From Ylistrum balloti (lineage: Eukaryota), in contig NW_026782027.1 in the NCBI RefSeq assembly GCF_031769215.1, positions 1 to 64,000 of the forward strand: DNA of 64,000 nucleotides, in the 5' to 3' direction. Positions 3,289-53,505 of this stretch are shown here, piece after piece. The notes below the pieces were generated by a model. That model worked only from the letters and a program-made list of their open reading frames with translations, had not been told where the DNA came from and ran no database searches. A program made the translations under genes and the position numbers. How positions within the stretch are numbered: the stretch's first letter is position 1; every line of letters begins with the position of its first letter.

Positions 3289-3407
3289 TTCAATAGTCTT
3301 CAATCAATGATTCATCATAAAGGTCGCCCTTTTTCTCGTGGTTATCCTACCTCTAGCAATGTCAGCTCCCCAGCAAAAGGTTGTAGACGCAGATATGAAC
3401 AGTATTT
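3289..3407 (+). pseudogene. P1: truncated pseudogene, exon 2 only, start codon ATA
   Basis: ATA AAG GTC GCC... gives (I)KVALFLVVILPLAMSAPQQKVVDADMNSI followed by a GTAAGT donor. Intron-2 homology stops at ~3972, where it is fused to M-downstream sequence. No exon 3, exon 4 or promoter nearby. Confidence 0.8.
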
Positions 3408-4820
3408 GTAAGTTCATGATTAATAATTTGTATAATTTTTTTTCTTGTCTCCCCAGGTCTTGTTTTTATTTTTATTTTATTTTTTTTTGCGTTAGCCTTT
3501 TTTGTTCTCTTAATGTAGAAACTATGTCATATGTATCATTGTATTTTCAATTTGAAATCGTTATAATGAGATATACTTCATGACACTAGTACTTCAAAAT
3601 GACCTGTCACATTCGTTCGAAAAGATATACCGTCCAAGAGTATTGATTAAGTATTGTTTCAAGAAACTGAAAATAAATAGAGGTCACATCGTTATAAAGG
3701 AATTGGATTTAAATGTATTACTTTTAAATTCATCAGCGCAATCCTATAGCTAAAATACTGTTATTGTGTTTCTCAGGAAGCCAGAAAAAGGACTGTTGTG
3801 TACTCCAGTGCACTCATCTTGCTAATATACTTTATATATATATAGTATCAATGCTTCAATATTTTTATTTCTACATATACTGATAAACTATGTAATCATT
3901 CAGTTGAGCGTTGTGTATGCTATAGTTATGTTCTTGAAAAAAAAACACTACCCTATTTATTGGTTTGAATGAATTACCCGATACCTAGTGCAACTACAGG
4001 TATGTGATTAAATTTAAACATTACGTGCAGTGTACGACAACCTGAGTTTCATGCATAACAAACTCTGACTGCAATAACCGCAATAGCTAGAATCAATAGG
4101 ATACCGATACCTGAGTTAGGTAAGATAATAAAAAATGGGTTTGCTCCATTGTGAAGTTCACTAATAAATTGTCCGGCTGATAGAAACGCTATATCCGCCT
4201 TGAGATTGGGCATATATTGTAATGTTCCTTGCAGTTGAGCAAATTTCTTATATTTAAACACCATAGGCATTTTTTTTAATTCCAAAGATTTATCGAATCG
4301 ATGAAGACATCGCGTCATCGATGATATTTTTACTTACTCTCTTGCTTATTGTATTCTTTTATCGAGCACAGAATATTTTGAAACGTTTACTTGTTTAAAG
4401 AAATAAACATATTAATCAATTTTTTTCTTGAAAATTGAAATTTTCTCTACCAATATGAACTAGCTGCTAATCAGAAACTAATGTTTACATTATTTTGCAG
4501 CTATATCATATCAAATCTTCAAAGTAGTTACACAAATTTAAATATGTAAAGATATCAAGAATTTCAGCAACGCTCCTGGTAAACTGGCTTGAATAAACGT
4601 GTAAAGAAGTATTGATATTATTTCACTTGAGGATAACCATTCCAAAAAGACACATCCACACCCACATGCGCACCTAAATAACAAATCCAAAACACACACA
4701 CAAAATCTACAACTTTTTTTGTAGTTGAACACATGAAATTATACCGTAATTTAGGATTTCGTTTTTTTTATTAGGATGACAAATTGTTCATATTCGTCTA
4801 AGGTTTATAGCACCTTTCTT

Positions 4821-6512
4821 TTAAGCAGAGGAACCTGGTGTAGGTGTCGGAATATGGAAAAAGTGGACGAGTTCTTGTAGCCTGTGAACGAAATAACGGA
4901 CATATTATTAGGCATAATTTAGCCCTAAACTGACAACATCAACATATGCGGTTGTTTAATGGGTTGATACATTTATCTAAACTTTCAATGACTTTCTATT
5001 GTATTACCTAGGAAAATGAAATATGCCTAGTCAAAAATAGTAGCTGCTATTGACTCCCTAGCGACCAGGCTTGATACTTGGATTAAGATGACCACAAACA
5101 ACTTTAAAAGGAGAAGAAAGCGAAAAAAAACCCAATTTAAACTGATAGATTAACCGTTTTACCATTTTAGCCATCGATATTCCGACCAATGCATTAATAT
5201 AGCAAATCAATTCCATTAAAACAGAAGAAACTTTGGCTGAGATCAAGGAATCTTTACCAAATGAAACAGATCAGCTAAAGCCTTAGACAAACGTATAAGA
5301 GTTTCTCCAATTAAAAATCAATGATAAAACATCTGCTGGTTGGACATTATAAGGACAGTGTCTATACTACGATCAAATCATAACACAGTGTAATGACACT
5401 GTAGTATTGTTATATTTTCGAGGATATCATTTCGCTGTTTCTTAAGGACGGAACAAATATTTGAACTATAATAACCTCCTTGGCATGTATATTTCTAGCC
5501 AAAATTTGACAAAAGGAAAATTAACAATATTTTGAAATTTTGATCTCAAATGTCCGTTCGAAGAAAGCAAATACATTTTGGGATTGTAAAATCTAACTGA
5601 ATACTTACGAATGACAGGCAAGAGGACAAGCATTGTGAGAAATGGTGTTAACAGATCCAGTAGAGAATTGTGTGTCAACAAGCGTGTTACATTCCTTCTC
5701 ACATTCTGCCTCCCTCTCGTTGGAACCGAGCTGTTGTACTAAATCTGTGACCAGCAGTTTGAGCTCGTTAGCGTGGAAAATGTTAACTGAAACATATGAG
5801 GATAAGATTACATTTTGTTTTACAAAATTATAAGGAATAATAACGACATTTCAACAGAATCTTAATTGAAAATCTCGTCCGATAGAAATGGGTTAAGATA
5901 TGAATAAAAAAAAACGATTTCCTCGCAGACATGTGAAAATTAAATAAGAAAAAGACCAGATAGTTTTAAAGAGAAAGCGTCTTCAACTTCATCGACGACA
6001 CATGCTGTTCTAACCTTTGTCAATCAAACAAAGTATTGTTATGTTCCAAAATTAAGCTCTGAAGAATATCATATTATATCAGGAAAAGAGAACCTACTCA
6101 TCAATTTTTCATGATGTTTCATAAGCATACGATACAAAAGAAAAATATCATGGATAAATTGTCGATCGTTGTCGTCAATCATTGGCTTCAGCTGTGTCTT
6201 GCTAATTGAAAGCGCTATACAATGTTGTTAGAACATCACATTCCAGTAAGGAACATACAAGTTTTGAATTTGAAGCAATTGGGATACAATCATCGATTGT
6301 TTTGTTTATAACGTTATCACAACTTTAAATACGCGAGTATAGTATATGGTTAACAGTGTCATTGATGTAAATGCTACTATTTGGTATACATCGAATAAGA
6401 TCTAATTAACTAAGTTAACACTTAACTTACGGATGCTGTTCAGGAATGGGTTAGGTTTAGGTGTCGACATTGCCAAAGGCAGGATCACCACGAGTAACAG
6501 TGCTAATTTCAT
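4821..6512 (-). CDS. M1: spliced gene for a 106-aa secreted twin-CX3C protein of unnamed family. Coding exons 6512-6431, 5786-5609, 4881-4821
   Basis: ATG in exon 2 after an AG acceptor (6525-6526). Canonical GT-AG introns in phase 1 then phase 2 join to an open frame: MKLALLLVVILPLAMSTPKPNPFLNSILNIFHANELKLLVTDLVQQLGSNEREAECEKECNTLVDTQFSTGSVNTISHNACPLACHSLQELVHFFHIPTPTPGSSA*. Hydrophobic signal peptide. AATAAA at 4772-4767, 48 nt past the stop. Same exon structure in the other copies. Confidence 0.88.
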
Positions 6513-7394
6513 GATGATACTCGGCTGAAAAGCAAAATACGAACTGTCGGAAAATAAAAGTGTTGTAAATAATAAAGGAACATGGTAAAATACATCAAGT
6601 TTTCTTGCGGCGTACAAAGGTGTTTGTCGAAAAGAGTAAAAGTGTGAACTAGAATCTTAGTAACATCAAACATATGTTACAATGACTATGGAGTCTGAGT
6701 AGTCAAATAAGTCAACATTTAAAATCAACAAATAAATGGTAGTTGTGTCAATTATACAGATGATAAACTGTATCGGCAAATCTGTCAGTGATTAACCGTT
6801 AGAAATTTTTAAAGATAAAGTATATGAGACACAAAAATACGTGAACAGCTTCAGCAAAGCAAGATGTTTGTTATTTTGTAGTTTAAACACCAGTTAAAAG
6901 ACTACAAATAAGATCTGACGCTGCACCAACTATAACGTTTATATACGTAAGATGAAAATCATGCACTCTGCGGAACGCAGTAAACACAACAAATTGGTAT
7001 GTTTAAAAAACAAACGAATTTCTATCGTACGGAACAAAACCATTATTTAAAATGTCTATTTCTTTTAGCAATAAAGTTCTAAAGCAGTATTTTTTTTACA
7101 AAAATAAGAAGCTGAAGATACCCTAAAACCAACGAAATACAAAATCTAGTAAAACAGAACGAAATTTGACTTAACTCAAATTATTTAAAACCAATAGGAA
7201 TGAAACTAACAGGAAACACAGAAGATAAATGTCGACAGGAAATGCTATTTTCTAAAGAAATTAATTGTAATTTTGAACATTTTGAAAATAATGTTAATGA
7301 TAATGAAATACTTTGTCAAAGAAATTCATTTTGACCAGATATATCGGTAAGAAAGAGCATTATATTCCATATAATCAATGCATAAGGAACTTAC

Positions 7395-7829: not shown

Positions 7830-8990
7830 GGCCAAGCCACTCTCGCACTATCGAATCTGAGCATACCTGTTAAATATCACTTATATCAATATTTTGATAT
7901 CTTGCTTTTTCATTTGTGTTAATCTTAGAGGTTCTGATTATGGCTGAGCATATTTTGCATGCGTATATTAACTATGATCTAAATTATCTATGACAGTTAA
8001 ATGAGAAATGCAGTTTTGTGAATAAAACAAAAATAGCCCATACATTTTCTGGAATAACGTCCAAATTTGTTTGCACTATCGACTCTTTCAAACACATAAG
8101 TGATCTAGTGAATGCAGTAGTATTTTAAACAAAATGACGAACTTTACAGACATAGGATGTTTGAATAATATAAACACAAATAAATGTTAGGAAACATTTT
8201 TTGGTGCACGATTTATATTTTCAACAGTTTTATATATTAAAAAATTACGTGAGAGCAAGTAATATATATTTACACAGTTCGCCTATTATATATAAATCAT
8301 CATTTCTTTTTGCAATTACCTTGTTTGACTCTAGCGAAAGTGTATCAATAAGATATTATCAATCTATTTCAATTTGACCCGTTGTATCCATGCAATTAAT
8401 ATAATCTTGTTGCTCCTTGCAGGCAGGGGCCTGAAATGGGATATTATGTGTTCGTTTCTGCAGTATAATGTAAACTATTTGATCATGATTAATGGAACAT
8501 CCGGGTGAAGATGACCGATGCCGACCCTTTGTGTTGATATGTTAAAGTTTCTCATGTGTACTTAAAATCACGTAGATTGATCCAATTGTTAAATTCCTAT
8601 TACATGCTTATTTGATAAACGCTTACCTTGTATACAACACATAATTAAAAATGTTATCAAGGTGTAATTTATATATTTTAGTAGCATGTACATTGTATTC
8701 CGATACATTCAGGCCGAATCGTATTGAAAATGTTTTACTTTAATTCTAATGCATTCATTTCTTTTATCTGGTATGTCCTAAAACTATGCTGCTCATTGAC
8801 TGACAATCTGACCAGATAATATCCTTGAGAATTATCAGTAGAATAGGTCGCAATCTAGAGGTTCTGTAAAAAAAACATTCTGGTCATTTCAATTTCACTT
8901 AAATGACATACGTATAACATTACATAATCGGGACTGAATTCCGTGTTTCTAATTATTCGAATAGAACGTAATTTTATCAGAATCGACATC
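7830..8990 (-). repeat. Intergenic block between M and P promoters. Copies at 1-990 (+), 23300-24256 (+), 31486-32620 (-), and diverged at 56745-57530 and 58370-58815 (-)
   Basis: Direct alignment by eye, e.g. the CTCTCGCACT...GATCTGAGCATACCTGTT motif at ~7850, ~31510, ~56770 and inverted at ~960. Confidence 0.75.
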
Positions 8991-9149
8991 TTCATTTGAT
9001 AGTAGGAATGGCGAGTTTGATGTAAAACAATGTCTGTCATATTTCAAAGTATAATCCAAACATCAACTAGTTTGACTGCTGTGTATTATTGACTAAACAA
9101 TGTGGATTTTGTATCCAAATGCAGAACCATATGAGCTAATCAATCCGTA

Positions 9150-9310
9150 TAATAAGGTCGCACTCAACAGCAGGTCGGAGTTCGGTGTTTCCAGATTAAC
9201 TATATGGCGGTTAATTTTACGCCTCAACGACGATGACAAATGGAGATCCGGAGTAATTTTGAGAAATCTAGATCGGACGGCAAATAATATCACTGATAGC
9301 GGAAAACGTC
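9150..9310 (+). mobile_element. Tc1 N-terminal HTH fragment
   Basis: FGVSRLTIWRLILRLN...RSG. The copy at 23050-23240 (minus) reads TIWRL..LNATG..D..SRSG....DRFI, matching the Tc1 paired-like region. Confidence 0.5.
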
Positions 9311-9529
9311 AAATCCACCCAAAAAATATGTGCGAAATAGACTGCGAGAGTCAACATTTCTATAGTTATTATTTTACATGATTCGTTGATGATGAGTTCG
9401 TTGTTTCGATTTCACGATTAGTTCATTATACCTAAATACATTTTGATGATTTTTGTTGACCTTCCACAGACGGCATACATAGTGTTAAAACAGGGCTACT
9501 CTACGCCGATTCCTTATCCAAATCAGTAG

Positions 9530-10345
9530 CATGTGTGTCCACCCCTACCTACAGCCGCTGCTCTTACTCTCCCATCAATGTGTTTATTGACGTTTGAGGG
9601 ATACCATTCCACTCCTGAATAAGGGGCTGAGTGAGTTGAGCGATGTTATAAGAGACGTTGACGTACTTACGAACGCTCCTGTCCAGCTCGTCCCACAAAT
9701 GCTCGACTGGGGACAAATCTGGACGTGTATGGTAGACAATTAAGAACAGGGACGTTGTTTTGAGCCAGAAAGTCACGACAAACCCTAGTGAAATATGGCA
9801 TAGCTTTGTCCTGCTGCAACGTAAGATGTATAAGAGGAAAGACGTGTGGTCTCAGGACTTGATCCCGATATGTTACTGCTCTAAGTTTGTCATGTATAAA
9901 CACGTGAGATGTTTTCAAGCTTTGAGATATTCCCCTGCTAATACCATAACATACTATCCCCGAATATGTCGCTTTCCGTCACGCAAGCTTCAGAATATCG
10001 CTCGCAACGACGTCGATAGGCACGTTGTCGTCTATCTGACTTGTAAAGCGAACCTCGTCAGAGTGAACAGCATGCGTCTCAAATGGGCCAAAGGAGACCG
10101 AATAGGTGGATGTGCAAGCGGCCACTGCATTCAACGTTAGCGTCGCCTCTGTGGAAGTGGCACCCCAACGTGAGGACGTCGTGGCATTGCCATACTGGCC
10201 AGCAATGAGTGCCATCTCCATGGCCCACGGAAATCGGGAACGTATGTTTAGGGACGTATGCATCTATCTTGACGTCGCGTAGTAACGCTCCTGGTACAGT
10301 AACACAATCTCCTTTTGGCTCTGAGACGTCCAACTGGGGTATTGG
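9530..10345 (-). mobile_element. Degenerate Tc1-type (DD34E) transposase remnant
   Basis: Motifs ..DEVRF, YRDQVLRPHV, QQDKA (QDNA-like), PDLSPVEHLWDEL, QEWNGIPQ across shifted frames. Confidence 0.85.
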
Positions 10346-11248
10346 TGCTTCATATACACCAAATTGGTGGGCTACTTTACGTTCTTAACCCCCCTGCTTT
10401 ACCAGAGCTATGTTTCAAACCTCTATCGACTTCACTCATTCGTGGCATTTCGCTCTACGATCTATTAAAAAGAAATGGTGTGTAGCTGATATGTATTGTT
10501 CATGATACACGCTTTCTTGCAAAATCTGCTTAAAGCAGCTTCGAGAGTGGTCACGGTTGGCTGAATTGTAACAATTTCACAATGCACGGGGGTAGCTCTG
10601 TGTCAAATTTAATTAAATTTCTTCCATGCCACAGTTATATTACAAAAACCGAACTTGCGTTTCTTTTTTCTGCTAGTATATACATATATATGTACTGTCT
10701 AACCTGAATGCTGTATGTGATAAGTAAGTTCGAATGATAAAGAAAGGATTTAGACATAGAGCTAATGTTGGAAGAACACTTGAAATGTAGCTCATGACGT
10801 GAAGTATGGGCCTGTAAATGCGAGCTGTAATTCAGAAGGTGGTGTTATAAATTAACTACTCGTAATTGTTCTTCTTGTATTTCAGTCTACTTTGTTTGTC
10901 TTTGTTTGTGCCCTTGCTGTCCCTACTATTTTTGTTTATTTTTTTCTCACCGGTCCGATTAACAACCATAATGGACCCTATTATTGTGTATAAAACAACG
11001 AAGTTGATCACAAAAAACTACTCGTAGTTGTTCGTCTTGTATTTCCATCTACTTGATAAGAATTAAAAAGCCATAATGCTAGTTCATAAATAAGTGGTGT
11101 AAGTAGGTAAACAGTATACTTGTGGCAGTAAACAGAGTATTATTCCATGATCATACAGCTTGTGGTTTCACGACACTAGTTTTATTGGACACCATTTTTG
11201 TATTTTATCGTCCCTTTGACATATGCCGTTTCATTTTGACGATTCCTC

Positions 11249-11305
11249 TATAAAATGGATTTCTGTTCCCCATTCATCCACACTGCTTTACAGGCCACTT
11301 GACTG
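11249..11305 (+). promoter_or_regulatory. P2 TATA box (11249-11255) and non-coding exon 1
   Basis: TATAAAA...gactg|gtaagt, near-identical to the P4 cassette. Confidence 0.68.
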
Positions 11306-12852
11306 GTAAGTTCTGCATGTATGTTAGAACATTTAATCTGAAGTTAGTGTACCTTAGTACTTCAGTTTGTACTTTGTTCCACATTATTTTTTCTCAAAGT
11401 TATCTCCTTGTATGGAATCTTTTTGGGTTATGCTTCTTTCGTTTTCAAGAGTAAAGTATTTCCTTGGTACAACATGATAATAAACACATTGCTTTGCTTG
11501 CTTATTTTGTTTATAGCTACGATCTTACAGCTGATAATAATTATGTGAAAGTTTTACAGTTGTCATCGTGATCTCATTGATAAATATCCTATTTCTTTAT
11601 GCGATATGCAGCTGGATGTGTTTGATGCTTGTTAATTTTTTTTGTTGGTTCCATTGTTGTATTTCTTGCTGTCATTTGCGAAAATTGACATTACTTACTT
11701 GGATTCATCAAGGTTTATATAGTGGAGTCGTCAATGAAACAAAAAACGTTTACGGAGCACATGGTGTTATTGTCCGTGAAATGTTTTCAGAAGTCTCCGT
11801 GTTAATCTTCATATACTTCATATTCTTTAGGTATTTTCTTGGATTTTCTATTCAGCAAGAACATGTTCATGTTCGAACAAAAAACTTTAAACGTTATGGA
11901 TATAATTAATGTACCTTTGTATTTAATTTTGTAATATTCAACACCACATATGTGTGCACCTTGTGTTCTTTTTTATGCGAATTGCATGTTTTAGTACCTC
12001 GTCCGTTCCACTGTATAACTTTAATAATATCATGTTTATCTGGAAACTTGTTCACTTATATTTTGTCTACCAATCTGAGAAGGAATCAGTGGACTATTTA
12101 CCGTAAAATGAGTTTATCAAGCGCGATTAATAAACCGTCATCTCCAGTCTTTTTTCTACATGATTGACAGAAATTAAATTAGATTATAACTAATAATTTG
12201 AATTATTTTCGCATTAATGAGAATTTTCAATCATAACTATCCTCCATGTTGCAATATACATGTACCTTTCTGCTCGAAAATTCTCCCTTAATATCTTTGT
12301 ATTTAATAAATATGACAGACTTGACAATGATGAATTTCTGCTTGCCCATGAAGAGATTATCTTAGTTGATCATTGTTTTAGGTGACATGTGATAATTGGG
12401 TGCTTGGTTTTATTAAGAGGTTCGGGAAACCTATTGGCCAAGAACTGTTTTTGTAAACGTGGATGCAATAATTATACAATCCTTTACAAGTAGAAATAAC
12501 AACATGAATAAAGTAACATCGAACAGGTCGGGAATCTTTCATATTTCTTTGTGACCTCATGTGATTGTCCAGTAGTGAAGAAAGTATTTTCCGCTTCGAA
12601 ATAAGTCTGCCTAAAAGGGAAAGTTAATTTTTTTACCTTACATCATTTCCGGAAGGTACATAAATGTTTTAGGGCTATTAATCACATTTGATTATCTGCT
12701 CTTGTATTACAATATGTGCATAGTCTATACTGGAATGCAATACTTTTTCGCTGTGTTAACAGTTATACTTTTAAAGTCCTTCTTTTGCCACAATTTTGAA
12801 ACGCTTTTACTTTTTTTCTCACAGCTCAATTGTCTTCAATCAACGATTCATC

Positions 12853-14278
12853 ATGAAGTTGGCTATTTTTCTCGTGGTTATCCTATCTCTGGCAATGTCA
12901 GCTCCCCAGAAAAAGTCATTAAACCCATTTCTGAACAGTTTTTGTAAGCTCATAATTATATACTTTATATAAATGCTTTATTTTTCTTGCCTCCCCAGTT
13001 CTTAGTTGACTCTTTTTGTGTTAGCCTTCATGATTTGTCCTCTTAATGGAGAAACTATACCATATGTATTATTGTATTTTCAACTTTAAATCACAATAAT
13101 GAAATAAACTTCATAACACTTGCTCTATCGAGAAGAGATTCCGTCCAAAAGTATTGATTAACAATTGTTACAAGAAACTAAAAAAAAAAAAAAAGAAAAA
13201 CAAAGAGGACAAATCGTTATAAAGGAATTGGATTTAAATGTATTACTATTAAATGAATCAGTGCACTCCTCTTGCTAAAATTATGTTTTTGGGTTTCTCA
13301 GGAAGCCGGGAAACGGACTGGAGTGTGTAATATTTCACTCCTCTTGCTATTACACTATATGGTATCAATGCTTCAATATTTAAACTTCTACATATTCTGA
13401 TAAAATATGATATCTTTGAGTAGAGCGTTGTGTGTGCCATAGCTTTTGTTCTTGAGAGAAACACTACCGTTATTGGTTTGAATGACATACAACTGGCCTT
13501 AAGTTAAAACAAAGTCATTTCTTTCTGAAGGACATGCATATATATGTGCAATAATCACCATACATTTTGTCCTCTCTTCTAGTGAACATTTTCCAAGTCA
13601 ACGAGCTCAAACTCCTGGTCACAGATTTAGTAAAACAGCTCAGTTCCGACGAGAGGGAGGCAGAATGTGAGACGGAATGTAACACGCTTGTTGACACACA
13701 ATTATCTACTGGATCTATCAACACCATTTCTCACACCGCTTGTCCTGTTGCCTATCATTCTTAAGTCTTCAGTAAGATGTTACAATCTCAAAACGTAAAT
13801 TTGCTTTCTTCTAAGGAACACCAAGGATACCAAAAGTTATCTATTGTCCCCTTGTAAACTTGATATCAATGACCTAAATGTAACAAACTTAAAGACACAG
13901 TTCACCGCTGGAGTAGTGGATACCCTTTCTGATCTTATATTGTAACTTTATATCAATATATGATTATTTATTGATAATTCTGTAAATTTTGGTGATTGTC
14001 AATTGTACATTAAACAACATTAAACTGTATTTGTCTCATAAAGGATGTAACTGTCATTTTGCTCTTGAGCGTTTTCAAACAAAACAATTGATGAATAACT
14101 TATGATCGAGACTTATTATGAAACAGAAGGCAACTTTTAAAGAAGTTAGGAACTCCAAGTCATTCAAATCATTAATATCTCTTATCTTATGACATTCTTT
14201 TTACCGTTTTACAGGTTACAGGAGTTAGTCCACCATTTTAAAATTTCTGTACCTTCGACAAGTTCACCAGTTCTCTAA
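12853..14278 (+). pseudogene. P2: probably defective P-type copy. Exons 12853-12943, 13583-13760, 14215-14278
   Basis: Exons give MKLAIFLVVILSLAMSAPQKKSLNPFLNSFLNIFQVNELKLLVTDLVKQLSSDEREAECETECNTLVDTQLSTGSINTISHTACPVAYHS and LQELVHHFKISVPSTSSPVL*. The fourth Cys is TAT (Tyr, 13753-13755). The exon-3 donor is TTAAGT instead of GTAAGT (13761), so read-through stops immediately at TCT TAA. Confidence 0.75.
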
Positions 14279-14659
14279 AGGAACTTTGTTTGCAAACCTG
14301 AACCGTAACGGAATGATTAAGTAAATAAACAGATAATGTTAACGGAGTTTCCATTTTGTCATTTATATTTGTGCGTTGTACAACATTAAGTGATATAACA
14401 AAATATTGATCAACAAACAATGATTGCATTCATTGTTCATTGTTCATTTCATTGTGAAAACCATTGGAATTGTAACTTTATGTTAGTTGCCAAATGCACA
14501 TATAGTCATTTAAAGTATAACTTTGTGCCAACAAAACTTATGATTCAGCCATCCGTGAAATATGTACTTTATGCGAATGTAATAAATACTGAGAGGAATA
14601 CGAAACACATTTTCAACATTTAGATTTAATAATGTAATAGTCACAACAAGACCGCCTTA

Positions 14660-14975
14660 GACCAAACTCAGGGTACCCCAATGTACACAAAACACAAAGC
14701 GGAAATAACAGTAGTTGCCAAGCCGATCCCTGATATCGTATGATTTCAAAGAGGAATGTTAATCCATTCTTTGGTAAGTGCGTTGGTCTATTTGCGGAGG
14801 TTATATAAGGTGTCGGCTGAATTCCCAAGTCTTCTCTCTAATCCATCCCACAGATGGTTGATTGGAGACAGGTCCGGACTACATGAGGCCTATCAACAGG
14901 TCGATATTCTGGGTTGCAGAAAACTCGAATGGTGCTTAATAAAGACCGGTACAACATGCGGATCTCATTTTGCTG
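14660..14975 (-). mobile_element. Tc1 C-terminal fragment
   Basis: Minus strand translates PDLSPINHLWDGLERRLG...KEWINIP. Confidence 0.7.
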
Positions 14976-15189
14976 TATTGTTTTAAAACAATAATCTAAT
15001 GGGCCTAATCAACCCTTGTATCCGACAGCAAATGCAGGCAGAACTGGTATGAAGTTACTGCAAATACGCAGAAAGAAGAAAACACTTGAAGACCCCAGAA
15101 ATAATAAAACAAAGATACAAATAAAAAGCCCATTCAACATGAACCAAGAATCAGACAAGGAAGAGCCAAGAGCATTAAATTGTTTCGTC

Positions 15190-17400: not shown

Positions 17401-17865
17401 TTATATGTTTTATTAAAAATTGTCTCATGTTTTCTGAAAAGGCCTACAATATGACTTTTCAGTAAAGGCCATCTCATATCTAATGTTTGATGTGTTCTAC
17501 TAGAAATTTCCATTATTGATGGATTTGTAATTAACATTCAATGTTCAATATCTATATACATATATTCTAGCACCTTTTTCTTCAATTTTCACCTACATTT
17601 AGCATAATCATCATTGTAATTACAATTACAATTTTTTGGAGGAAATAAAGAAATGATGACGATGATGGTAGAACATCTTTGTATTCTGAATAGTGCAACT
17701 ACATGTATGTGCGTGAATAAACACCTAAATAACAAACCCAAAACACAAAATACAAAACTATGTTTCGTGTAGTTGAACACATAAGATGATACTGTAACTT
17801 AGGATTTAGTTTTTATTAGGATGACAAATGTTTTATATTCGTCTCAGGTTTCTAGGACCCCAATT

Positions 17866-21195: not shown

Positions 21196-21264
21196 GATAT
21201 AAAATACGAAAGAAAGTGTTCACGAATATTTCATATTATAAACTATATCAGCAGAGGTATTTGT

Positions 21265-42076: not shown

Positions 42077-42116
<40 letters not shown>

Positions 42117-42500
42117 AATTTTATATCAATATTTGACTATTTAGTGATAATTCTGTAAATTTTGGTGATTGTCAATTGTACATTAAACAACATTAAACTG
42201 TTTTTGTCTCATAAAAGATGTAACTGTCATTTTGCTCTTGAGCGTTTTCAAACGAAACAATTGATGAATAACTTATGATCGTGATTTATTATGAAAATGA
42301 AGGTAACTTTTAAAGAAGTTAGGAACTCCAAGTTATTCAAGTCATTAATACAAAGTAACTAAACAGGAAGAATTTATACTTTTTGACTTACAATACCTCT
42401 TATCTTATGACATTTTTTTTTACCGTTTTACAGCTTACAGGAGTTAGTCCACTATTTTAAAATTCCTGTACCTTCGACAACAAGTTCACCAGTTCTCTAA
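36417..42500 (+). CDS. P4: 111-aa secreted twin-CX3C protein (P subfamily). Coding exons 36417-36507, 37134-37311, 42434-42500. Intron 3 carries a LINE
   Basis: Splices to MKLALFLAVFLPLAMSSPQKKALNPFLNSTLNIFKVNELKLLVTDLVKQLGSDEREAECETECNTLFNTQFSTGSIDSISHSACPVACHSLQELVHYFKIPVPSTTSSPVL*. Donors are GTAAGT and GTTAGT. AATAAA at 42546-42551. Confidence 0.8.
37495..42108 (+). mobile_element. 5'-truncated Tx1/L1-clade non-LTR retrotransposon. ORF2 ~37687-41458 with APE endonuclease, RT and zf-RVT-type region; few frameshifts and stops
   Basis: Endonuclease motifs SLNVRG, LQETH, GGDWN, SRLDYF. RT motifs KSPGSDG, WRPLTLLNTDYK, VDFEKTFD, RQG, QYADD. C-terminal CTFC...FFYC. (TA)n tail. 9-bp target duplication TATATTGTA at 37486-37494 and 42109-42117. 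Empty site in the paralogue at 13936-13944. Confidence 0.92.
42081..42112. repeat. (TA)n microsatellite forming the LINE 3' tail
   Basis: About 16 TA units directly visible. Confidence 0.95.
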
Positions 42501-42949
42501 AGGAACTTTCTTTGCAAACCTGAACCGTAACGTAATGATTAAGTAAATAAACATAATATGATGTTAACGAAGTTTCCATTTTGTCATTTATATTTGTGCG
42601 TTGTACGACATTAAATGATATAACAAAAATATTGATAAACAAAGAATGATTGTATCATATATGTCCGAATATATTTGAGTTTTTAAAAACATTTCTCAGT
42701 AATGCTAGAGTAGTAAAGAAATTATCATAACAGGATCATGAATTCATTTCATTGTGAAAACCATTGGAATTGTAACTTTATGTATGTTGCCAAATGCACA
42801 TATAGTAATTAAAGTATAACTCTGTACTCGCAAAATTTATGATTCAGCCATCCATGAAATATGTATTTTATGCGAATGTAATAAACACCGAGAGGAATAC
42901 GAAACGCATCTTCAACATTTAGATTTAATAAAGTAAGAGTCACAATAAG

Positions 42950-43270
42950 ACCGACATGAACTTAGGGTACCCCAATATACACAAAACATTAAGCGGAAAT
43001 AACGGTAGTTGTCAGGCCGATCCCTGATATCGTGTGTCCATGGAGGAATGTTAATTCATTTTTTGGTAAGTTCGATGGCCAATTTGCGAAGGTTACATAA
43101 GGTGTCTGTTGGATTCCCAAGTATTCTCTCTAATCCACCCCATAGATGGTTGATTGGAGACAGGTCCGGACCACATGAGGCCTATCAAAAGGTCGATATT
43201 CTGGGTTGCAGAAAACTCGAATGGTGCTTAATAATGACCGGTACAACATGAGGATCTCATTTTGCTATAC
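42950..43270 (-). mobile_element. Tc1 C-terminal fragment, duplicate of 14660-14975
   Basis: Same PDLSPINHL motif region in the paralogous position. Confidence 0.65.
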
Positions 43271-43479
43271 TGTTTTAAAACAATAATCTAATGGACCTAA
43301 TCAACACTTGTATCTGACAGCAAATGCAGGCAGAACTGGTATGAAGTTACTGCAAATTCGCAGAAAGAAAAAAATACCAGAAGACCCAAGAAACAGTAAA
43401 ACAAAGATACAAATAAAAAGCACATTCAACATGAACCAAGAATCAGACAGAGTAAAGAGCATTTAATTGTATCACACAG

Positions 43480-46380
43480 TTGTTTCGTCCTTCAGTGACT
43501 CTTCTCTTTGTGTGCCTCGTTTTCCCTACAAGGTTCTGTCATCATCATGGAATATTTTAACGCTCAACTCTGTGGTCCTCACAAACTTTCAAAATTATCG
43601 AGTTCTTCGTCTACAACGATGTTTAGACCGATATCAGTTGAGCGCTCTGACTACTTCCTACATTTGCTCTGGACCATTATATGCCTATGTACACTCTGAT
43701 AATGGCATTTCATCTCTTATTGATCATGTGATAATAGATTCATCCAAAATTGACCTCATATCAAACTCTTTGTGTGCCTCGTTTTCCCTACAAGGTTCTG
43801 TCATCATCATGGGATATTTTAACGCTTGCCTCTGTGGTCCTCGCAAACTTTCAAAAGTATCGAGGTCTCCGTCTACAACGATGTTTAGACCGATATCAGT
43901 TGAGTGCTCTGACTACTTCCTCCATTTGCTCTGGACCATTATATACCTATGTACACTCTGATGACGGCATTTCATCTCTTATTGATCATGTGATAATCGA
44001 TTCATCCAAAATTGACCTCATATCAAACTGTTTTATCGATGACCAACCTTACTTGGACGTCTCCGATCACAGACCAATCTTCTGTGATATTCTTTTTCCA
44101 ACCGCATCGTCCATAAAATCTCTCCAGCTTGAACGCAATATTTTCAAGTGGCCTTCCGATGGCACTTTTTCAGGTACTGAAGTCTATCGCGATAACCTTC
44201 ATCAGCTTATAACGCAGTCCAACCTCATTAGTTACACAATGTTTCATACATCGACAGTTAGACGGACTTATTGACTAAAGGTATTCAGGACATATCCCTA
44301 TCGTCTCTCCAAAAGAGGAAGTTTAAGAAATTCTTGAAACCCTATTGGAAAGGAAAGCTGAAAGAGTTACATCGCGATATGTGGCGGTCGAAATGTATTT
44401 GGGACGAAGGTCGTCCTCGTGATCCTAACTCTCACTCCTTTTGCTTATACAAGGACGCGAAACGTAAGTTCCGGCATAAACAACGCCAGTTATCAGAGAA
44501 CCATATTATTATATGGACTTCCACATCAAAGTAGCGGCGGATATATATGTCTTTGTATATTATTTAATGCTTTCAGAAGGTTTGATTATGTACCTGTGTC
44601 ACTAAAACATGGCTTGATTTGCACGTTATATATAGGTCATAATAAGCCAAGAATAACCCAAATAGCTACAGAGCGATTTCTCTCCTACCCGTTATTCTAA
44701 AAGTGTATGAAAAAACTACTCTTGATAAGATTAGAGTCTATAAACCTTTTTCATGTAAATTCATTACAGCATGGTTTCAAAAACAAGCTAGTATCTCTAT
44801 GACTTCATATATTGTGCAAGAAACAATCGCGTACGCTTCTGAACATGATAGAAAATTGTTCACTTGTTTTTAGACGCGTCTAAACCCTTTGATTGTGTCT
44901 GGCTCGACGGTCTGTTTTTTAAACTATCACATTTGGCTTTTGACAGATAAATTATTAGTATGATTATGTCTTTACACAAGGATATGTATAGTGTTGTTAT
45001 GCATCAAAATCTTGTGTCTAAAGTGTTCGAGATAATCCAGGGGACACGTCAGGACAGTATTATCTACCCTTGGCTCTACTGTGTTGATATCAACGATTTC
45101 CTGACTGATCTTACTAGTTCTGTATTCTAGCTAGCTATATCAGATGTAAATGTCAAGAGACCTTCGCAAGCAGATGATATCTGTCTTCTTTCACTTACCA
45201 AACACAATTAAGATATGCTGATAGATATTTGCTAAAATTATAGTTGTAATTGGAGATTTTAATATAATGCCTCCAAATCAGCAGTTGTTTGTCCTCAACG
45301 AAAGTAGTAATGTTCGCTCACAATCGTATCGTACTTGGTATCTAGGTGACAATGTTGTTCATGAAAGCACAAATGTTAAACACGTAAGTATTAATTTGAA
45401 TAAATTTAAACCAGGTCGGCCTGATGTCGGCGATGTTATCCACAAACTGCGAGGTCAGTGTTTCGCTCTACTGAATTGTTATTTATTTGGTCCCAGTATC
45501 AATCCTTGACTGGAGTCCATATGTATTTGTCTGTTGTACTACCTTGAGGTATGTTTGGTTGTGATCTCTGGCACTCTCTCTCCAAATCTGATTGGCGTCG
45601 CCTAGAATCAGCCAATTTATGTGCAAAATAAATACAAAATTGCCTACTTCGTACTAGGTCTGATGTAGCATTGGGAATGATAGGTTTGCCTTCTATACAT
45701 CTTTATGTAGAGCAATGTAAGCTTCGTTTTTTTCGAGGCTTTGCGTAATATAAAAACAACTTGTACTTCAAAGCAACTCTTTTTGTTGCGTTTACACCAA
45801 AAATATCTTGGGAGTAAATAACGCTAAGAAAGGTTTCATCAACATTTGGGATGCTTTACACAAATATAACTTCCGAGATCTCTCACTTGATTTTCTAAAT
45901 TCTGGGATATTTCCATCCAAGCTTAGCAGGAAATATCTTGTAAAGAATGTCCTTCTCTGTAAAGAATCTGATGACTGGCGTTTACGTTCGTTAGAATTTT
46001 ATAGATTCAAAATTCTTTATCCTGATATGGTTCCTGATGTAATTTGGTTATTTTCTAAACGCCATTCAAATTTTTGCAGGACATGTAAAACTGTGGCGAA
46101 AATGTGGATTCTCCTCTCCTACGTGTGAACTTTGATGTGCTAGATGGAAAGGCACTTTTGAAGACGCAGTCGCCCATTGTTTACTTGCCTGCAAAGAGCC
46201 CATATTAAAGTTTCTGCGAGATACTAGTTTACTAGTTTTGTGGTCAAATATCCAGTTAATGTGTAGGTATCATTTGACCAGGCGGACAGAGCTGTCAAGA
46301 CAGCGGCTCCGTGGGGTGCTCCCAGCGGGGGCATTTATCAATCATTATATGATGATTCATATTTGTTCACATTTTTTTTT
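43480..46380 (+). mobile_element. Duplicate of the degenerate LINE, with an internal 262-bp tandem duplication and extra retained segments
   Basis: Highly similar to 15190-17400. Tandem copies at 43504-43765 and 43766-44027. Confidence 0.75.
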
Positions 46381-46826
46381 TAAAATTGTCTCATGTTTTC
46401 TGAAAAGGCCTACAATATGACTTTTCAGTAAAGGCCATCTCATATCTAATGTTTGATGTGTTCTGCTAGAAATTTCCATTATTGATGGATTTGTAATTCA
46501 CATTCATTGTTCAGTATTTATATACATATATTCTTGCACTTTTTCCTTTAACTTTCACCTACATTTATCATAATTATCATTGTAATTACTCTTAAATTTT
46601 TTGGAGGAAATAAAGAAATGATGTTGATGATGATGGTAGAACATCTTTGTATTCTGAATAGTGCAACTACATGTACTTGAGTGAATCAACACCTAAATAA
46701 CAAACACAAAATACAAAACTATGTTTTGTGTAGTTGAACTCATAAGATAATACTGTAACTTCGGATTTCGTTTTTATTAGGATGACAAATGTTTTATATT
46801 CGTCTCAGGTTTCTAGGACCCCAATT

Positions 46827-48601
46827 TTAAGCAGAAGAAGCTGGTTGAGATGTCGGGATATGGAAAAAGTGGACGAGTTCTTGTAGCCTGTGAACGAAAT
46901 AACGGACATATTATTAGACATAATTTAGCCCTAAACTGACAACATAAACATATGCGGTTGTCTAATGGGTTGATACGTTTATCTAAACTTTCAATGTCTT
47001 TCTATTGTATTACCTAGGAAAATGCAATATGCCTAGTCAACGTTAGCTGTTATTGACTCCATAGCGACCAGGCTTGATGCTTGGTTAAGATGACCGAAAA
47101 TTTCTTTAAAAGGAAAAGAGAGCTTAAGAAATGGAGAAAGAGATTGCTAATTGTGTAACAACACAGATACTGATAGATTAACTGTTTTATTGTTTTATCG
47201 TTATTCCGACCAATGCATGAACATCGCAAATCAATTCTGGTGACACAGAAAAGACTGAGACTGAGTCCAATGACCCTTTAACCAATGAAACAGATCAGCT
47301 AAAGCCTTAGACAAACGTATCAGTAATTATCTAATTACAAATCAATTATAAAACATCTGCTGGTTGAACATTATAAGGACAGAGTCTATACTGCGATTAG
47401 ATCATAACACATCAGTGTAATGACATTGTAGTATTGTTATATTTTCGAGGATATCATTTCGCTGTTTTTTTTAAGGACGGAAAAAATGTTTGAACTTATA
47501 TTTGATGAAGATAACACAAATCCCTATCATAACCTCCTTGATATGTATATTTCTACAAGCTTCATTAACATAGCCAAAATTTGACAAAAAGGAAAATTAA
47601 CAATATTTTGAAATAGTGATCTCTAATGTCCGTTCGAAGAAAGCAAATATATTTTGGGATTGTAAAATCTACCCGAATACTTACGAATGACAGGCAAGAG
47701 GACAAGCATTGTGAGAAATGGTGTTAACAGATCCAGTGGAGAATTGTGTGTCAACAAGCGTGTTACATTCCCTCTCACATTCTAACTCCCTCTCGTTGGA
47801 ACCGAGCTGTTGTACTAAATCTGTGACCAGCAGTTTGAGCTCGTCAGCGTGGAAAATGTTAACTGAAACATATGGGGATAAGATTACATTTTGTTTAATA
47901 AAATTATAAGGAATTCCAACGACATTTCAACAGAATCTTAATTAAAAATCAAGTTCGATAAAAATAGGGTAAGATATGATTAAAAACGATTTACTCGGAG
48001 ACAAGTGAAAATAAAATGAGAAAAAGACCAGGTATTTTGGAAGAGAAAGCGTCTTCTACTTCATCGACGACACTTGCTGTTCTAACCGTTGTCAATCAAA
48101 CAATACTTTTTACGTTCCAAAATTAAGCTCAGAAGAATACCATAGTATATCAGCAAAAGAGAACCTTCTCATCAATTTGTCATGGTGTTTCATAAGAATA
48201 CGATACAGAAGAAAAATATCACGGATAATTTGTCGATCATTGTCGTCAATTATTGGCTTCAGCTGTGTCTGGATCATTGAAGGCTCTATACAGTGTTATT
48301 AGCACAAAAAACTCATTCCAGCAAGGAACATACAAGTTTTGAATTTGAAGCAATTAGGATACAATCATTGTTTGTTTTGTTTATAACGTTATCACAACTT
48401 TATTTACGCGAGTGTGATGTATTGTTAACAGTGTCATTGATGTAAATGTTACTATTTGGTGTACACATCGAATAAGGTCTAATTAACTATGTTAACACTT
48501 TACTTACGGATGCTGTTCAAGAATGGGTTATCAGATAAAGCTCTTTGGGGTGCCGACATTGCCAAAGGCAGAACAACCACGAGTAAAAGTGCTAATTTCA
48601 T
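46827..48601 (-). CDS. M4: 110-aa secreted twin-CX3C protein. Coding exons 48601-48508, 47862-47685, 46887-46827
   Basis: Splices to MKLALLLVVVLPLAMSAPQRALSDNPFLNSILNIFHADELKLLVTDLVQQLGSNERELECERECNTLVDTQFSTGSVNTISHNACPLACHSLQELVHFFHIPTSQPASSA*. AATAAA at 46778-46773. Confidence 0.88.
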
Positions 48602-49556
48602 GATGATACTCGGCTAAATAGCACAAATGCGAACTGTCGGAAAAAGAAAAGTGTTGTAAATAAAAAAGGAATATTGTAAAATACCCCAATTTTTCTTGCA
48701 GCGTATAATGGTGTTTGTCGAAACGAATAAAAGTGTGAACGAGAATCTTAGTAAAAAACATCAAACATATGTTACAATGACCATTGAATCAGTGTAGTCC
48801 AATCTGTAAACATTGAAAATCAACAAACAAATGGAAGTTAAGTTGTACCAATTATACAGATGATAAACTTCATCGGCAAATATGTCAATGATAAACCATT
48901 TCAACACAAAAAAATAAAATAACTGCGATGAAGATAAAATGCGTGAACAGCTTCAACAATGCAAGATATTTGTTATTGTGCAGTATTAAAACCAGTAACT
49001 GCAAATAACATTTGAAGCCGCACAAACTACATCTTCTATATATATAAGAGTAAACCATGCACTCTGCGGAATTCAGTTATCACAACGAATTGATATGTCA
49101 TACAAACCAACGAATTTCTATTGTATGGAACAAAATCATTATTTAAAACGTGTATTTCTTTAAGGTATTTTTGGAATCAAAATTCTAGTAGAATTAAAAT
49201 GTTATCAATCGATGTTTCAAAACAAGAAATTGAAAAAAAAGCTTAATAGGCGCTAAAACAAAACAAAAAAGGAAAAAAAAGAAAAAAAGAACAAAAAATC
49301 TTACAAAATAAAACGGAACGAAATTTGATTAAACAATGAAAGTATGCAAAAAGCAAAAGGAATGAAACCAAAAAGGAAACACAGGAGATAAATGTCGTCA
49401 GGAAATGCTATTTTCCAAAATAATAAACTGTAATTTTGAACATTTTATAATAATTTTATTAATAATGATAGATCGTGTCAGAGAAATTCATTTTGAGAAG
49501 ATATATCGGTAAGAAATAGCATTATATTCCATATAATAAATGCATTAGGAACTTAC

Positions 49557-49613: not shown

Positions 49614-50892
49614 GAGATAAATGCGTGTCTTTACTGGCTTAATGGCAAAACACACCCATGTGAAAAGACATCTGTACACAAAGTCGTACGATTACGTGAT
49701 CTATTTTACTTTCCGTTCTTATCATGATCAGACCCATTTGATATAAATATATGAGATAATGAAATAGTCGATTTACATTACGCATACCTGATATACGTTT
49801 TGTGATATATTATTAAGATCAGAATTGAACAACATTGAACCGATTGCCAAATTAATTAAAGGAAAACAGAGAGTACTTGGTATCAGTAGTATGATATCGT
49901 TACAGTTGTTTCACTCTTCAAGGAATCGTCAGTGATGCTAAATTACTATTTTTTCAAAACCTAGAATAATAAAGACTGATCGAAGAGATGTCATAATCTA
50001 GAACGTCTTTGTACTCTAAATAGTGCAACTACAGGTATGCGATTGAATTTAAACATAACGTGCAGTGTAAGACAACCCGAGTTTCATGCATAGGAAACTC
50101 TGACTGCAGTAACCGCAATAGTTAGAATCAATAGCATACCAATACCTGACAAAGGTATGATTATCTAAAGATTATAAAAAATGGGTTTGCCCCATTGTGA
50201 AGTTCACAAATAAATTGTCCGGCTGATAGAAACGCTATATCCGCCTTGAGAATGGGCATATATTGTAATGTTTCTAGCAGTTGAGTAAATTTCTTACACT
50301 TAAACACTATAGGCAGTATTCTATCTTTTACATTCCAAAGATTTATCGTATCAATGCAGACATCGCGTCATCGATGATTTTTTTTTCACTTATTTTCTTG
50401 CTTATTGTATTCTTCAACGAAGAAAGGCTACCTGCTATAGAGCACCGAGTATTTTGAAACGTTTACTTGTTTGAACAAATAAACATTTTAAACAAACTTT
50501 TCTTGAAAATTGAAATTTTCTCTACCAATATGAACTAGCTGCCAATTAGAGACTCATTTTTACATTCTTTGCAGCTATGTTACATCAAATCTTCAAAGCA
50601 GTTACACAATTTTAAATATGTAAAGATATCAAGACTTTCAGCAACGCTCCTCGTAAACTGGCTTGAATAAACATGTAAAGAAGTATTGAGATTATTTCAC
50701 TTGAGGATAACCATTCCAAAGAGAGACACCCTCACCCACATGCACACCTAACTAACAAATCCAAAAAAACACACAAAAAACTACAAGTTTTCTTGTAGTT
50801 GAACATATGAAATAATACAGTAATTTAAGATTTGGTTTTTTATTAGGATGGCGAAATGTTCATATTCTTCTAAGGTTTATAGCACCTTTCTT

Positions 50893-52592
50893 TTAAGCAG
50901 CAGAAGCTGGTGTAGGTGTCGGGATATGGAAAAAGTGGATGAGTTCCTGTAGCCTGTGAACGAAATAATGGACATATTATTAGGTATGATTTAGCCTAAA
51001 ACTGACAACATAAACATATGCGGTTGTTCACTGGGTTGACACATTGATCTAATCTTTCAATGTCTTTCTAATGTATTACTCAGGAAAATGCAATATAACT
51101 AGTCAACGTTAGCTGCTTTTGACTCCATAGCGACCAGGCTTGATGCTTGGATTAAGATGACCACAAACAATTTTAAAAGGAAAAGAAAGAGAAAAAAATA
51201 TATACTGATAGATTAACTGTTTTACTGTTTTAGCCATCGATCTTCCGACCAATGCATGAATATAGCAAATTAATTTCATTAAAACAGAAGAAACTATGGC
51301 TGGGTTCAATGACTCTTTTCCTAATGAAACAGATCAGCTAAAGCCTTAGACAAACGTATAAGAGTTTATGTAATTAAAAATCAATGATAAAACATCTGCT
51401 GGTTGGACATTATAAGGACAGAGTCTATACTGCGATCAGATCATTACACATCAGTGTAATGACACTGTAGTTATATTTTCGAGGATGTCATTTCCCTGTT
51501 TCTTAAGGACGGAAGAAGTATTTGAACTTATAATTGATGAAGAAAACACAAATCCCTATCATAACCTCCTTGACATGTATATTTCTACAAGCTTCATTAA
51601 CATAGCCAAAATTTGACAAAAAGGAAAATTAACAATATTTTGAAATAGTGATCTCTAATGTCCCTTAGAAGAAAGCAAATACATTTTGTGATTGTAAAAT
51701 CTACCCGAATACTTACGAATGACAGGCAAGAGGACAAGCAGTGTGAGAAATGGTGTTAAGAGATCCTGTAGAGAATTGTGTGTCCACAAGCTTGTTACAT
51801 TCCGCCTCACATTCTGTCTCCCTCTCGTTGGAACCGAGCTGGTCTACTAAATCTGTGACCAGGATTTTAAGCTCGTCAGCGTGGAAAACGTTAACTGAAA
51901 CATATGAGGATACGATTACATTTTGTTTAACAAAATTATAAGGAATACTAACGACATTTCAACAGAATCTTAATTTAAAATCAAGTTCGATAAAAAGAGG
52001 GCAAGATATGAATAAAAAAACCGATTTACTCGGAGACAAGTGAAAATAAAATGAGAAAAAGACCAGGTATTTTGGTTCTAACCTTTGTCAATCAAACAAT
52101 ACTTTGTTATGTTCCAAAATTAAGCTCAGAAGAATATCATATTATATCAGCAAAAGAGAACCTACTCATCAATTTTCATGGTGTTTCATAAGCATACGAT
52201 ACGAAAGAAAATATCACGGATAAGTTGTCGATCGTTGTCGTCAGTCTTTGGCTTCAGCTGTGTCTTGCTAATTGAAAGCGCTATACAGTGTTTTTAGAAC
52301 ATCACATTCCAGCAAGGAACATACAAGTTTTGAATTTGAAGCAATTAGGATACAATCATTGTTTGTTTTGTTTATAACGTTATCACAACTTTATTTACGC
52401 GAGTGTAATGTATTGTTAACAGTGTCATTGATGTAAATGCTACTATTTGGTGTACACATCGAATAAGGTCTAATTAACTATGTTAACACTTTACTTACGG
52501 ATGCTGTTCAAGAATGGGTTATCAGATAAAGCTCTTTGGGGTGCCGACATTGCCAAAGGCAGAACAACCACGAGTAAAAGTGCTAATTTCAT
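50893..52592 (-). CDS. M5: 110-aa secreted twin-CX3C protein. Coding exons 52592-52499, 51894-51717, 50953-50893
   Basis: Splices to MKLALLLVVVLPLAMSAPQRALSDNPFLNSILNVFHADELKILVTDLVDQLGSNERETECEAECNKLVDTQFSTGSLNTISHTACPLACHSLQELIHFFHIPTPTPASAA*. The exon-2 acceptor is AAG rather than TAG but keeps AG. AATAAA at 50844-50839. Confidence 0.86.
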
Positions 52593-53448
52593 GATGATAC
52601 TCGGCTTAATAGCACAAATGCGAACTGACGGAAAAAGAAAAGTGTTGTAAATAAAAAAAGGAATATGGTAAAATGCATCAAGTTTTCTTGCAGCGTATAA
52701 TGGTGTTTGTCGAAACGAATAAAAGTGTGAACTAGAATCTTAGTAAGAACATCAAACATATGTTACTATGACCATTGAATCAGTGTAGTCCAATCTGTAA
52801 ACATTTAAAATCAACAAACAAATGGTCGTAAAGTTATATCAATTATACAGATGATAAACTATATCGGCAAATGTGTCAATATGAAATTTATGAAAAAGAG
52901 TTAATGAGAATAGCAATGCGTAAACAGCTTCAGCAAAGCAAGATGATTATTATTGTGTAATGTTAAAACCAATAAAAAAAACTGCAAATAACATTTGAAG
53001 CTGCACAGACTATTTCTTCTATATACCTAAGAGTAAATCATGCACTCTGCGGAATGCAGCAATCACAACAAATTGGTATGAATTTCTATTGTACGGAACA
53101 AAATCATTATTTAAAAAGTGTACTTCTTTTATCAAACAATTTTTCGAAAAGAAGAATCTTTATTGACATTAAACAAAAAAAAAAAAAAAAAAACGAATTC
53201 TAAAACGGAACGAAATTTGATATAACGATCAAATTATTTGAAACCAATGGGAATGAAACCAATAGAGAAACACAAAAAATAAATGTCGACAGGAAATGCT
53301 ATTGTCTAAAGAAATTAATTTTAATTTTGAACATTTTGAAAATAATGTTAATAATAATGATAGACAATGTCAGAGAAATTCATTTTGACAAGATATATCG
53401 GTATGAAATAGCATTATATTCCATATAATCAATGCATAAGGAACTTAC

Positions 53449-53505
53449 CAAAGTGGTCGGTAGTTGAGGACTGTGACGATCGATGGGCGGTAAGCTGTTT
53501 ATATA
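53449..53505 (-). promoter_or_regulatory. M5 TATA box (53505-53498) and non-coding exon 1
   Basis: Conserved TATATAAA...ctttg|gtaagt cassette. Confidence 0.72.

Follow-up and report, generated by a model that had tools for sequence, protein, structure and literature searches.

A Family of Secreted Twin-CX3C Proteins in Bivalves and Gastropods, Mainly Encoded as Predicted Polyproteins, and Its Single-Unit Gene Cluster in the Scallop Ylistrum balloti

Here, we describe a family of small secreted proteins common to bivalves and gastropods, represented by a gene cluster in a 64,000-nucleotide stretch of the genome of the scallop Ylistrum balloti (NCBI RefSeq assembly GCF_031769215.1, contig NW_026782027.1, hereafter C170, positions 1 to 64,000 of the forward strand; hereafter the window). 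The unit of the family carries a pair of CX3C motifs and, in the prevailing form, is strung in several copies behind one signal peptide, with putative Lys-Arg cleavage sites at the borders; scallops also possess single-unit genes, and nine copies of such a gene make up the cluster. We found no name, Pfam model, solved structure, or paper for this family. On balance, we favor a model in which the units derive from polyproteins and most likely serve as an extracellular ligand produced in bulk. The finding is larger than that of a preliminary description of the window, which had recognized the cluster: a mollusc-wide secreted family, mainly a convertase-type polyprotein, with a scallop-specific single-unit spin-off.

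A Mollusc-Wide Family Prevailing as Polyproteins

Searching 1.84 billion cluster representatives with a profile built from seven scallop proteins yielded 54 matches at E≤1e-3 and 27 at E≤1e-10. The named representatives are molluscs without exception, both bivalves (Solemya, Argopecten, Mizuhopecten, Pecten, Crassostrea/Magallana, Mytilus, Sinanodonta, Mercenaria, and Mya) and gastropods (Patella, Haliotis, Littorina, Pomacea, Batillaria, Babylonia, and Nucella), with further members contributed by marine metatranscriptome collections. The family spans Bivalvia and Gastropoda and is not restricted to one lineage, unlike the lineage-expanded family put forward in the preliminary description; its account of a secreted, unnamed twin-CX3C family, on the other hand, agrees with what we observe. 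All matches are labeled uncharacterised or hypothetical, and no paper naming the family was found in the literature searched by identifiers, sequence motifs, and description; a paper on cadmium binding in scallops that mentions Ylistrum is unrelated and concerns meprin.

Many of the matches are long proteins of 2–9 tandem units, with 4–9 in the common form of the polyprotein. Counts of [KR]R sites follow those of the units (e.g. 8 sites in a protein of 9 units, 7 in one of 7, and 6 in one of 6). Each site ends a linker rich in Thr, Pro, Ala, and Ser and stands directly ahead of a conserved hydrophobic N-terminus, the residues immediately following Lys-Arg being conserved as F-[ILV]-L-D, or NPFL in scallops. 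All members begin with a hydrophobic signal sequence; in the single-unit proteins from outside scallops, the signal peptide is followed by a short stretch of a few residues up to Lys-Arg and then by the same N-terminus as in polyprotein units. A signal peptide followed by repeated units bounded by dibasic sites, the design of a convertase-processed polyprotein, is found in these relatives and in a Ylistrum gene on contig C803 that adjoins the cluster. The prevailing form of the family is thus a polyprotein with predicted cleavage at Lys-Arg, a context that the preliminary description had missed. Single-unit homologues are nonetheless numerous in some scallops, with at least five in Pecten maximus.

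Could the repeats be a structural material produced in bulk, as part of mucus, the egg coat, byssus, or the organic matrix of the shell, with the linkers as O-glycosylated spacers? The Thr/Pro/Ala/Ser-rich linkers and tails would suit such a material, as would the high copy number and the near-identity of the units in the Argopecten polyprotein; yet a dibasic site is conserved in every linker, favoring separate small units over a polymer, and Pfam gives no match to known matrix families. We regard a matrix role as decidedly improbable.

The oyster members provide a view of expression. A complete polyprotein open reading frame (ORF) of 479 amino acids runs uninterrupted along contigs of ~1.5 kb from 8 separate sequencing runs, and a second oyster polyprotein is present in many more. 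Because the scallop homologues have introns within and between units, we take the oyster contigs to be mRNA, and the family is apparently well expressed at least in oysters.

Sequence Signature and Predicted Structure of the Unit

The twin CX3C motif is present in all 77 non-redundant units that we aligned, and its four Cys are the only invariant residues; conservation exceeds 90% for a Glu that precedes the first Cys and for a Gln that follows the last. The signature is approximately G-[ST]-D-x-[TRS]-E-x-x-C-E-x-x-C ... C-P-x-x-C-x-S-[FL]-Q-x-L, with 9–20 residues between the Cys pairs (mode 12, and 20 in all window copies). The units are acidic, with a median isoelectric point (pI) of 4.7 and a single one of the 77 above 7.5, and a cationic antimicrobial peptide is therefore unlikely. 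This accords with the preliminary description, which had judged the M1 copy of the window acidic, His-rich, and not a classical cationic antimicrobial peptide; its mature chain indeed contains 9 Asp/Glu, 4 Lys/Arg, and 5 His.

An AlphaFold2 model computed on the alignment of the 77 units consists of four helices, with the CX3C pairs on helices 3 and 4 (mean predicted local distance difference test score, pLDDT, 62.8; an earlier model from 7 sequences reached 52.8). The helical hairpin expected by the preliminary description is thus predicted, yet at low confidence. The Cys pairs probably staple the two helices into a hairpin, for which C1–C4 and C2–C3 disulfides would fit both the model and known twin-CX3C proteins. 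Comparisons of structure yielded no match at E≤1e-3 in the PDB with Foldseek, generic helical hairpins at noise level (best Z 5.5) in a wide VIA structure search, and a best template modeling score (TM) of 0.48–0.54, also at noise level, in an atlas shape search; solved structures, queried by sequence with a single unit and with the profile, contained no relevant match.

These features bear on a possible carrier or binding protein, whose units would take up lipids, other small hydrophobic compounds, or metal ions in haemolymph, in digestive fluid, or in eggs. Nematode polyprotein allergens and saposins, likewise released from precursors of several units, would be the analogues. A polyprotein architecture suits high dosage, the all-helical prediction is amphipathic, the acidic units hold several conserved His near the Cys pairs, and the best shape matches, weak as they are, are saposin C (Foldseek E 2.6) and prosaposin (TM 0.48). 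However, these matches stay at noise level, neither SapB nor any other Pfam family is matched, and the Cys differ from those of saposins in their pattern and also in where they lie, on helices 3 and 4 rather than on the first and the last. A carrier function is, we believe, unlikely.

The Single-Unit Gene Cluster of Ylistrum

Nine copies of the small gene were retrieved between positions 3317 and 52592 of the window by motif search in six frames, by blastn with a single copy as query, and by tblastn with the three coding exons of that copy; exon borders were set by hand. Five copies (M1–M5) lie on the minus strand and four (P0–P3) on the plus strand, every P copy facing an M copy and M5 being unpaired. 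Six copies, M1–M5 and P3, are intact, with ORFs of 106, 110, 112, 110, 110, and 111 amino acids, respectively, canonical GT-AG borders throughout, splice phases 1 and 2, and C-x3-C-x20-C-x3-C in all six. On the minus strand, M1 (4750–6945; LOC132546600) has coding exons at 6512–6431, 5786–5609, and 4881–4821, a TATATAA box at 6945–6939, and an AATAAA signal at 4772–4767. M2 (17800–20020) has coding exons at 19573–19480, 18874–18697, and 17926–17866, both introns being GT-AG, and M3 (28240–30470) at 30019–29920, 29292–29115, and 28365–28305, with a run of Thr and then Arg-Arg ahead of the conserved N-terminus. M4 (46760–49050; LOC132546599) has coding exons at 48601–48508, 47862–47685, and 46887–46827, and M5 (50830–53040) at 52592–52499, 51894–51717, and 50953–50893. 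The plus-strand P3 (36390–42560; LOC132546608), the intact representative of a second subtype, has coding exons at 36417–36507, 37134–37311, and 42434–42500. Dibasic sites in these single-unit genes are at best Lys-Lys or Arg-Arg.

The other three copies, all on the plus strand, are dead or probably so. P1 (12853–14340; exons 12853–12943, 13583–13760, and 14215–14278) is a probable pseudogene of the P subtype, with the fourth Cys changed to Tyr and an exon-3 donor of TT instead of GT. P0 (3317–3373) is a remnant of the signal-peptide exon with ATA in place of the start codon and without a core exon downstream, and P2 (26167–27158) is a pseudogene comprising a signal-peptide exon remnant (26167–26223) and partial pieces of the core exon (26878–26958 and 27083–27158). 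The ATG to ATA start loss is common to P0 and P2.

Flanking signals are likewise shared among copies. AATAAA stands exactly 49 nt past the stop codon in all seven full-length copies, and a conserved acceptor precedes the ATG by 12 nt in the M type and 27 nt in the P type; from this acceptor, a non-coding first exon is plausible. In the preliminary description, the nine copies, the six that splice into complete ORFs of 106–112 amino acids with the C-x3-C-x20-C-x3-C core, the conserved splice phases, and the position of AATAAA were all read correctly, while the conserved TATA box holds for the M copies, which carry a TATA-like box ~435–445 nt 5′ of the ATG. Its term "hidden" is apt for the ORF track but not for the annotation: a protein search with the core exon showed that RefSeq already carries LOC132546599, LOC132546600, and LOC132546608 as uncharacterized proteins. 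The spliced M1, M4, and P3 are identical, letter for letter, to the RefSeq models P0001, P0002, and P0004, and the three coding exons and their phases are therefore independently supported. The cluster genes are real.

P0001, looked up by exact match among the collected contigs, had no record there. The only sequencing run matched to the window covers introns evenly, with no intron-skipping joints seen in that run, which is therefore DNA-like and uninformative on transcription. In the same run, the M1 intron shows at 5915–6015 a summed contig depth of ~2270, against 20–130 elsewhere, with many loose ends at 5968–6002; this is probably a short high-copy interspersed repeat.

If the copies were non-functional relics or artefacts of gene prediction, one would expect damage such as that seen in three of the nine, and dN/dS (the ratio of nonsynonymous to synonymous divergence) does rise to 0.7–0.9 in some M-type pairs, from few substitutions; the sole, DNA-like run lends these Ylistrum genes no support for transcription either. 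However, six ORFs are intact, with canonical splice sites and conserved signals, dN/dS between subtypes is 0.23–0.36, orthologues are present in Pecten and Mizuhopecten, and the oyster relatives occur on mRNA-like contigs. That the copies are relics or artefacts is accordingly exceedingly improbable.

From Polyprotein Gene to Gene Cluster

A genome-wide search confined the family in this genome to contigs C170 and C803. Positions 1–6383 of C803 are an inverted copy, 98.8% identical, of positions 1–6365 of the window, beyond which C803, and with it the gene cluster, runs on to the left of the window; the two contigs represent either two haplotypes or an unmerged overlap. C803 contains one more intact single-unit gene (P0003, LOC132561505). 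It also carries, on the minus strand from 36889 down to ~24998 and ~18–30 kb to the left of the window, a polyprotein gene with at least six units (loci L015 and L016; terminal exon not located). Two core exons of C803, at 10544–10750 on the plus strand and 14300–14506 on the minus strand, have identical translations and lie inverted ~3.5 kb apart, one of them belonging to LOC132561505.

The located parts of the polyprotein gene are a signal-peptide exon, six core exons (one per unit), and five junction exons, each junction exon encoding the tail of a unit, the linker, Lys-Arg, and the N-terminus of the next unit. The single-unit genes have the same core exon and the same phases, and a junction exon is represented in them by two separate pieces, the first and the last coding exon. 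The polyprotein design of C803 recurs in Mizuhopecten, where a single-unit gene lies ~8 kb downstream in the same orientation. When core exons are placed in a tree, the single-unit genes stay separate from a clade (support 98/99) that gathers the polyprotein units of three scallops, and terminal units from different species pair according to their position. It follows that both forms are older than the divergence of these scallops. Among the scallops compared here, Ylistrum has the largest set of single-unit genes.

Inside the window, synonymous divergence (dS) between the M and P subtypes amounts to 0.5–0.8, with dN/dS of 0.23–0.36 and thus purifying selection. Pairs of M type are separated by dS of 0.07–0.19, near their intron divergence of 0.06–0.12, and their dN/dS of 0.16–0.92 derives from few changes; P1 and P3 give 0.94, as expected if P1 is dead. 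A 23.5 kb segmental duplication has arms at 8153–16860 and 31745–45424 that are 91–96% identical, and it copied pairs of P and M genes, including the already dead P0/P2 type. Two subtypes, recent duplicates, three dead copies, and a segmental duplication together support birth-and-death evolution, as the preliminary description had proposed.

Some other features of the window deserve mention. The last intron of P3 extends to 5.1 kb because of an insertion resembling a long interspersed nuclear element (LINE), a degraded plus-strand retroelement at 37494–42743 with ORFs at 38218–39603, 39727–40776, and 40871–41458, in which Pfam recognizes RVT_1 in two pieces and zf-RVT. ORFs of 163–174 amino acids without Pfam match occur at 15208–15717 (plus), 24345–24836 (minus), and 43467–44274 (plus), the first and the last falling in the two arms of the segmental duplication.

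Tandem expansion, pseudogenes, and two diverged subtypes could also be read as traces of an arms race, amplifying and diversifying a humoral defence effector with antimicrobial or anti-parasite action. Multi-unit precursors of plant alpha-hairpinins and amoebapores yield defence peptides, an analogy in favor, and the hairpin part of our model aligns to vicilin-buried peptide-8 (VBP-8; Z 5.0, root-mean-square deviation 2.5 over 46 residues). That Z score, however, lies inside the stated noise range of the tool; moreover, 76 of 77 units have pI below 7.5, the core motif has been retained in both bivalves and gastropods rather than evolving fast, and dN/dS is below 1 in every comparison. A defence effector seems improbable to us.

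Processing and Possible Role

The route by which the units would be made can be inferred from sequence. Each unit, of ~75–90 residues and predicted to be all-helical, would have its last two helices stapled into a hairpin by two disulfides between the CX3C pairs. In most species, the units are strung behind one signal peptide, and each ends with a Thr/Pro/Ala/Ser-rich linker and Lys-Arg; they would fold oxidatively in the endoplasmic reticulum, be cleaved at Lys-Arg by furin-type or prohormone-type convertases in the secretory pathway, and then be trimmed, each precursor releasing many acidic copies of ~9–10 kDa. Scallops keep such a polyprotein gene and have single-unit genes adjoining it; in our model, halves of a junction exon have turned into the first (signal peptide) and last (tail) coding exons of the latter. 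In Ylistrum, segmental duplication has raised the number of single-unit genes, some of which have since decayed.

As to function, a role as extracellular ligand, of the hormone, pheromone, or cytokine kind, is suggested more tentatively than the processing route. We favor it because conservation across the bivalve–gastropod split extends to the free N-terminus and to a polar surface motif, and because the units are not cationic and the precursor has the design of a prohormone; even so, such a role is possible rather than probable. Taken further, the family might represent a new conchiferan ligand with a fold of its own (a four-helix, twin-CX3C hairpin), cut by convertases from a polyprotein and acting through a receptor, and the single units of which in scallops gave rise to a fast-duplicating cluster; in this full form, the proposal is speculative and rather doubtful.

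Several points weigh against the model of polyprotein-derived ligands. The structure model is weak, at the pLDDT given above, and no known fold is matched above noise. Both Lys-Arg cleavage and disulfide pairing are predictions, and the sole run found for Ylistrum is DNA-like. The M copies are without a clean dibasic site and may be released by signal peptidase alone. A cluster of many paralogues with pseudogenes is unusual for hormone genes and fits defence, mucus, reproductive, or carrier proteins better, which speaks to some extent against a classical hormone. Finally, the text of an oyster neuropeptide precursor survey (PMC8398477) makes no mention of the family.

Whatever the function, a family conserved in commercially important bivalves and many gastropods has gone unnamed, and its dibasic polyprotein form offers a concrete processing hypothesis. 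The scallop locus illustrates how one repeat of a polyprotein may turn into an independent gene, from which a cluster then develops. Should the units be signaling ligands, the few known protein hormones of molluscs would gain a new member; should they be carriers or defence proteins, they would provide a new animal example of the twin-CX3C hairpin design.

Comparison with Known Systems

Pfam searches with the exon translations, whole proteins, and all 77 units returned no family above cut-off, matches on long polyproteins being sums of weak repeats in which no single stretch passes. In line with the preliminary description, neither saposins nor small Tims nor defensins are matched, and the novelty check that it had proposed, by sequence and profile search, gave no confident match to a characterized family. 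The comparisons that follow are thus with systems that the family resembles in motif, size, or precursor design.

The mitochondrial small Tims form a twin-CX3C helical hairpin, as is predicted for the family, but they have no signal peptide and reside in the mitochondrial intermembrane space, whereas our family members carry a signal sequence; no match to zf-Tim10_DDP was obtained in Pfam. The luminal domain of TMEM59/BSMAP (PF12280) is matched at positions ~9–50 by 10 of the 77 units at 15–17 bits (best E 0.007), yet the best score, 16.9 bits over ~40 of 197 positions, is below the cut-off of 25 and insignificant after 77 queries, and TMEM59 is a membrane protein. This similarity probably reflects the shared twin CX3C motif only. 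Ylistrum has a TMEM59/BSMAP-like gene of its own on contig C58 (3462864–3465214, minus strand), whose luminal part also has CX3C pairs and which represents the kind of protein behind the ten sub-threshold Pfam matches.

Eclosion hormone (PF04736) is, like our family, small, secreted, and helical, and its core includes two CX3C pairs; it has, however, six Cys, whereas the units described here have four and give no Pfam hit to it at E≤10. In a language-model search, eclosion hormone clusters come out on top for two family members that are 36% identical, M1 and one from Sinanodonta, with a score of 0.80 that lies within noise. The scallop has an eclosion-hormone-like gene of its own on C283 (1002865–1003173; locus L027, 1441–1830), with two six-Cys units in one open frame and Lys-Arg between them. 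Mollusc precursors of this hormone resemble the family polyproteins in design, carrying two units separated by a dibasic site. We nevertheless rejected kinship, since hhalign against the scallop eclosion-hormone-like gene gives a probability of 0.2% and that gene is a separate one on C283. A two-ligand eclosion hormone precursor, equally odd, is likewise reported for the Pacific oyster in PMC8398477.

The plant alpha-hairpinins (e.g. vicilin-buried peptides and multi-module precursors such as Tk-AMP-X) share the C-x3-C...C-x3-C motif with the family and hold it on a pair of antiparallel helices, as the model predicts for the family; like the family, they often derive from precursors of several modules. 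They are nevertheless plant peptides of 30–50 residues, usually basic, while the family unit is from animals, has 75–90 residues, is acidic, and bears two extra predicted N-terminal helices. The family shares the alpha-hairpinin motif, yet the profile search detected no relation to solved members, and the alignment with VBP-8 is within noise, as noted above; as to a compact helix–loop–helix of 30–50 residues with C1–C4 and C2–C3 disulfides, the model, at its pLDDT of 62.8, places the Cys pairs on adjacent helices of a four-helix unit of ~80 residues.

Counterparts in precursor design are prosaposin and the nematode polyprotein allergens, which, as predicted for the family, are polyproteins of disulfide-bonded helical units released by proteases, in the secretory or lysosomal pathway in the case of the ~80-amino-acid saposins. 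Saposins have six Cys linking the first and last helices, whereas the family has four, in two pairs placed by the model on helices 3 and 4; with this different Cys pattern, no SapB match in Pfam, and insignificant shape matches, membership among saposin-like proteins does not follow. The units of nematode polyproteins are longer than those of the family. Multi-unit precursors of disulfide-stapled helical proteins are thus an already known kind of system, to which bivalves and gastropods would contribute a twin-CX3C version.

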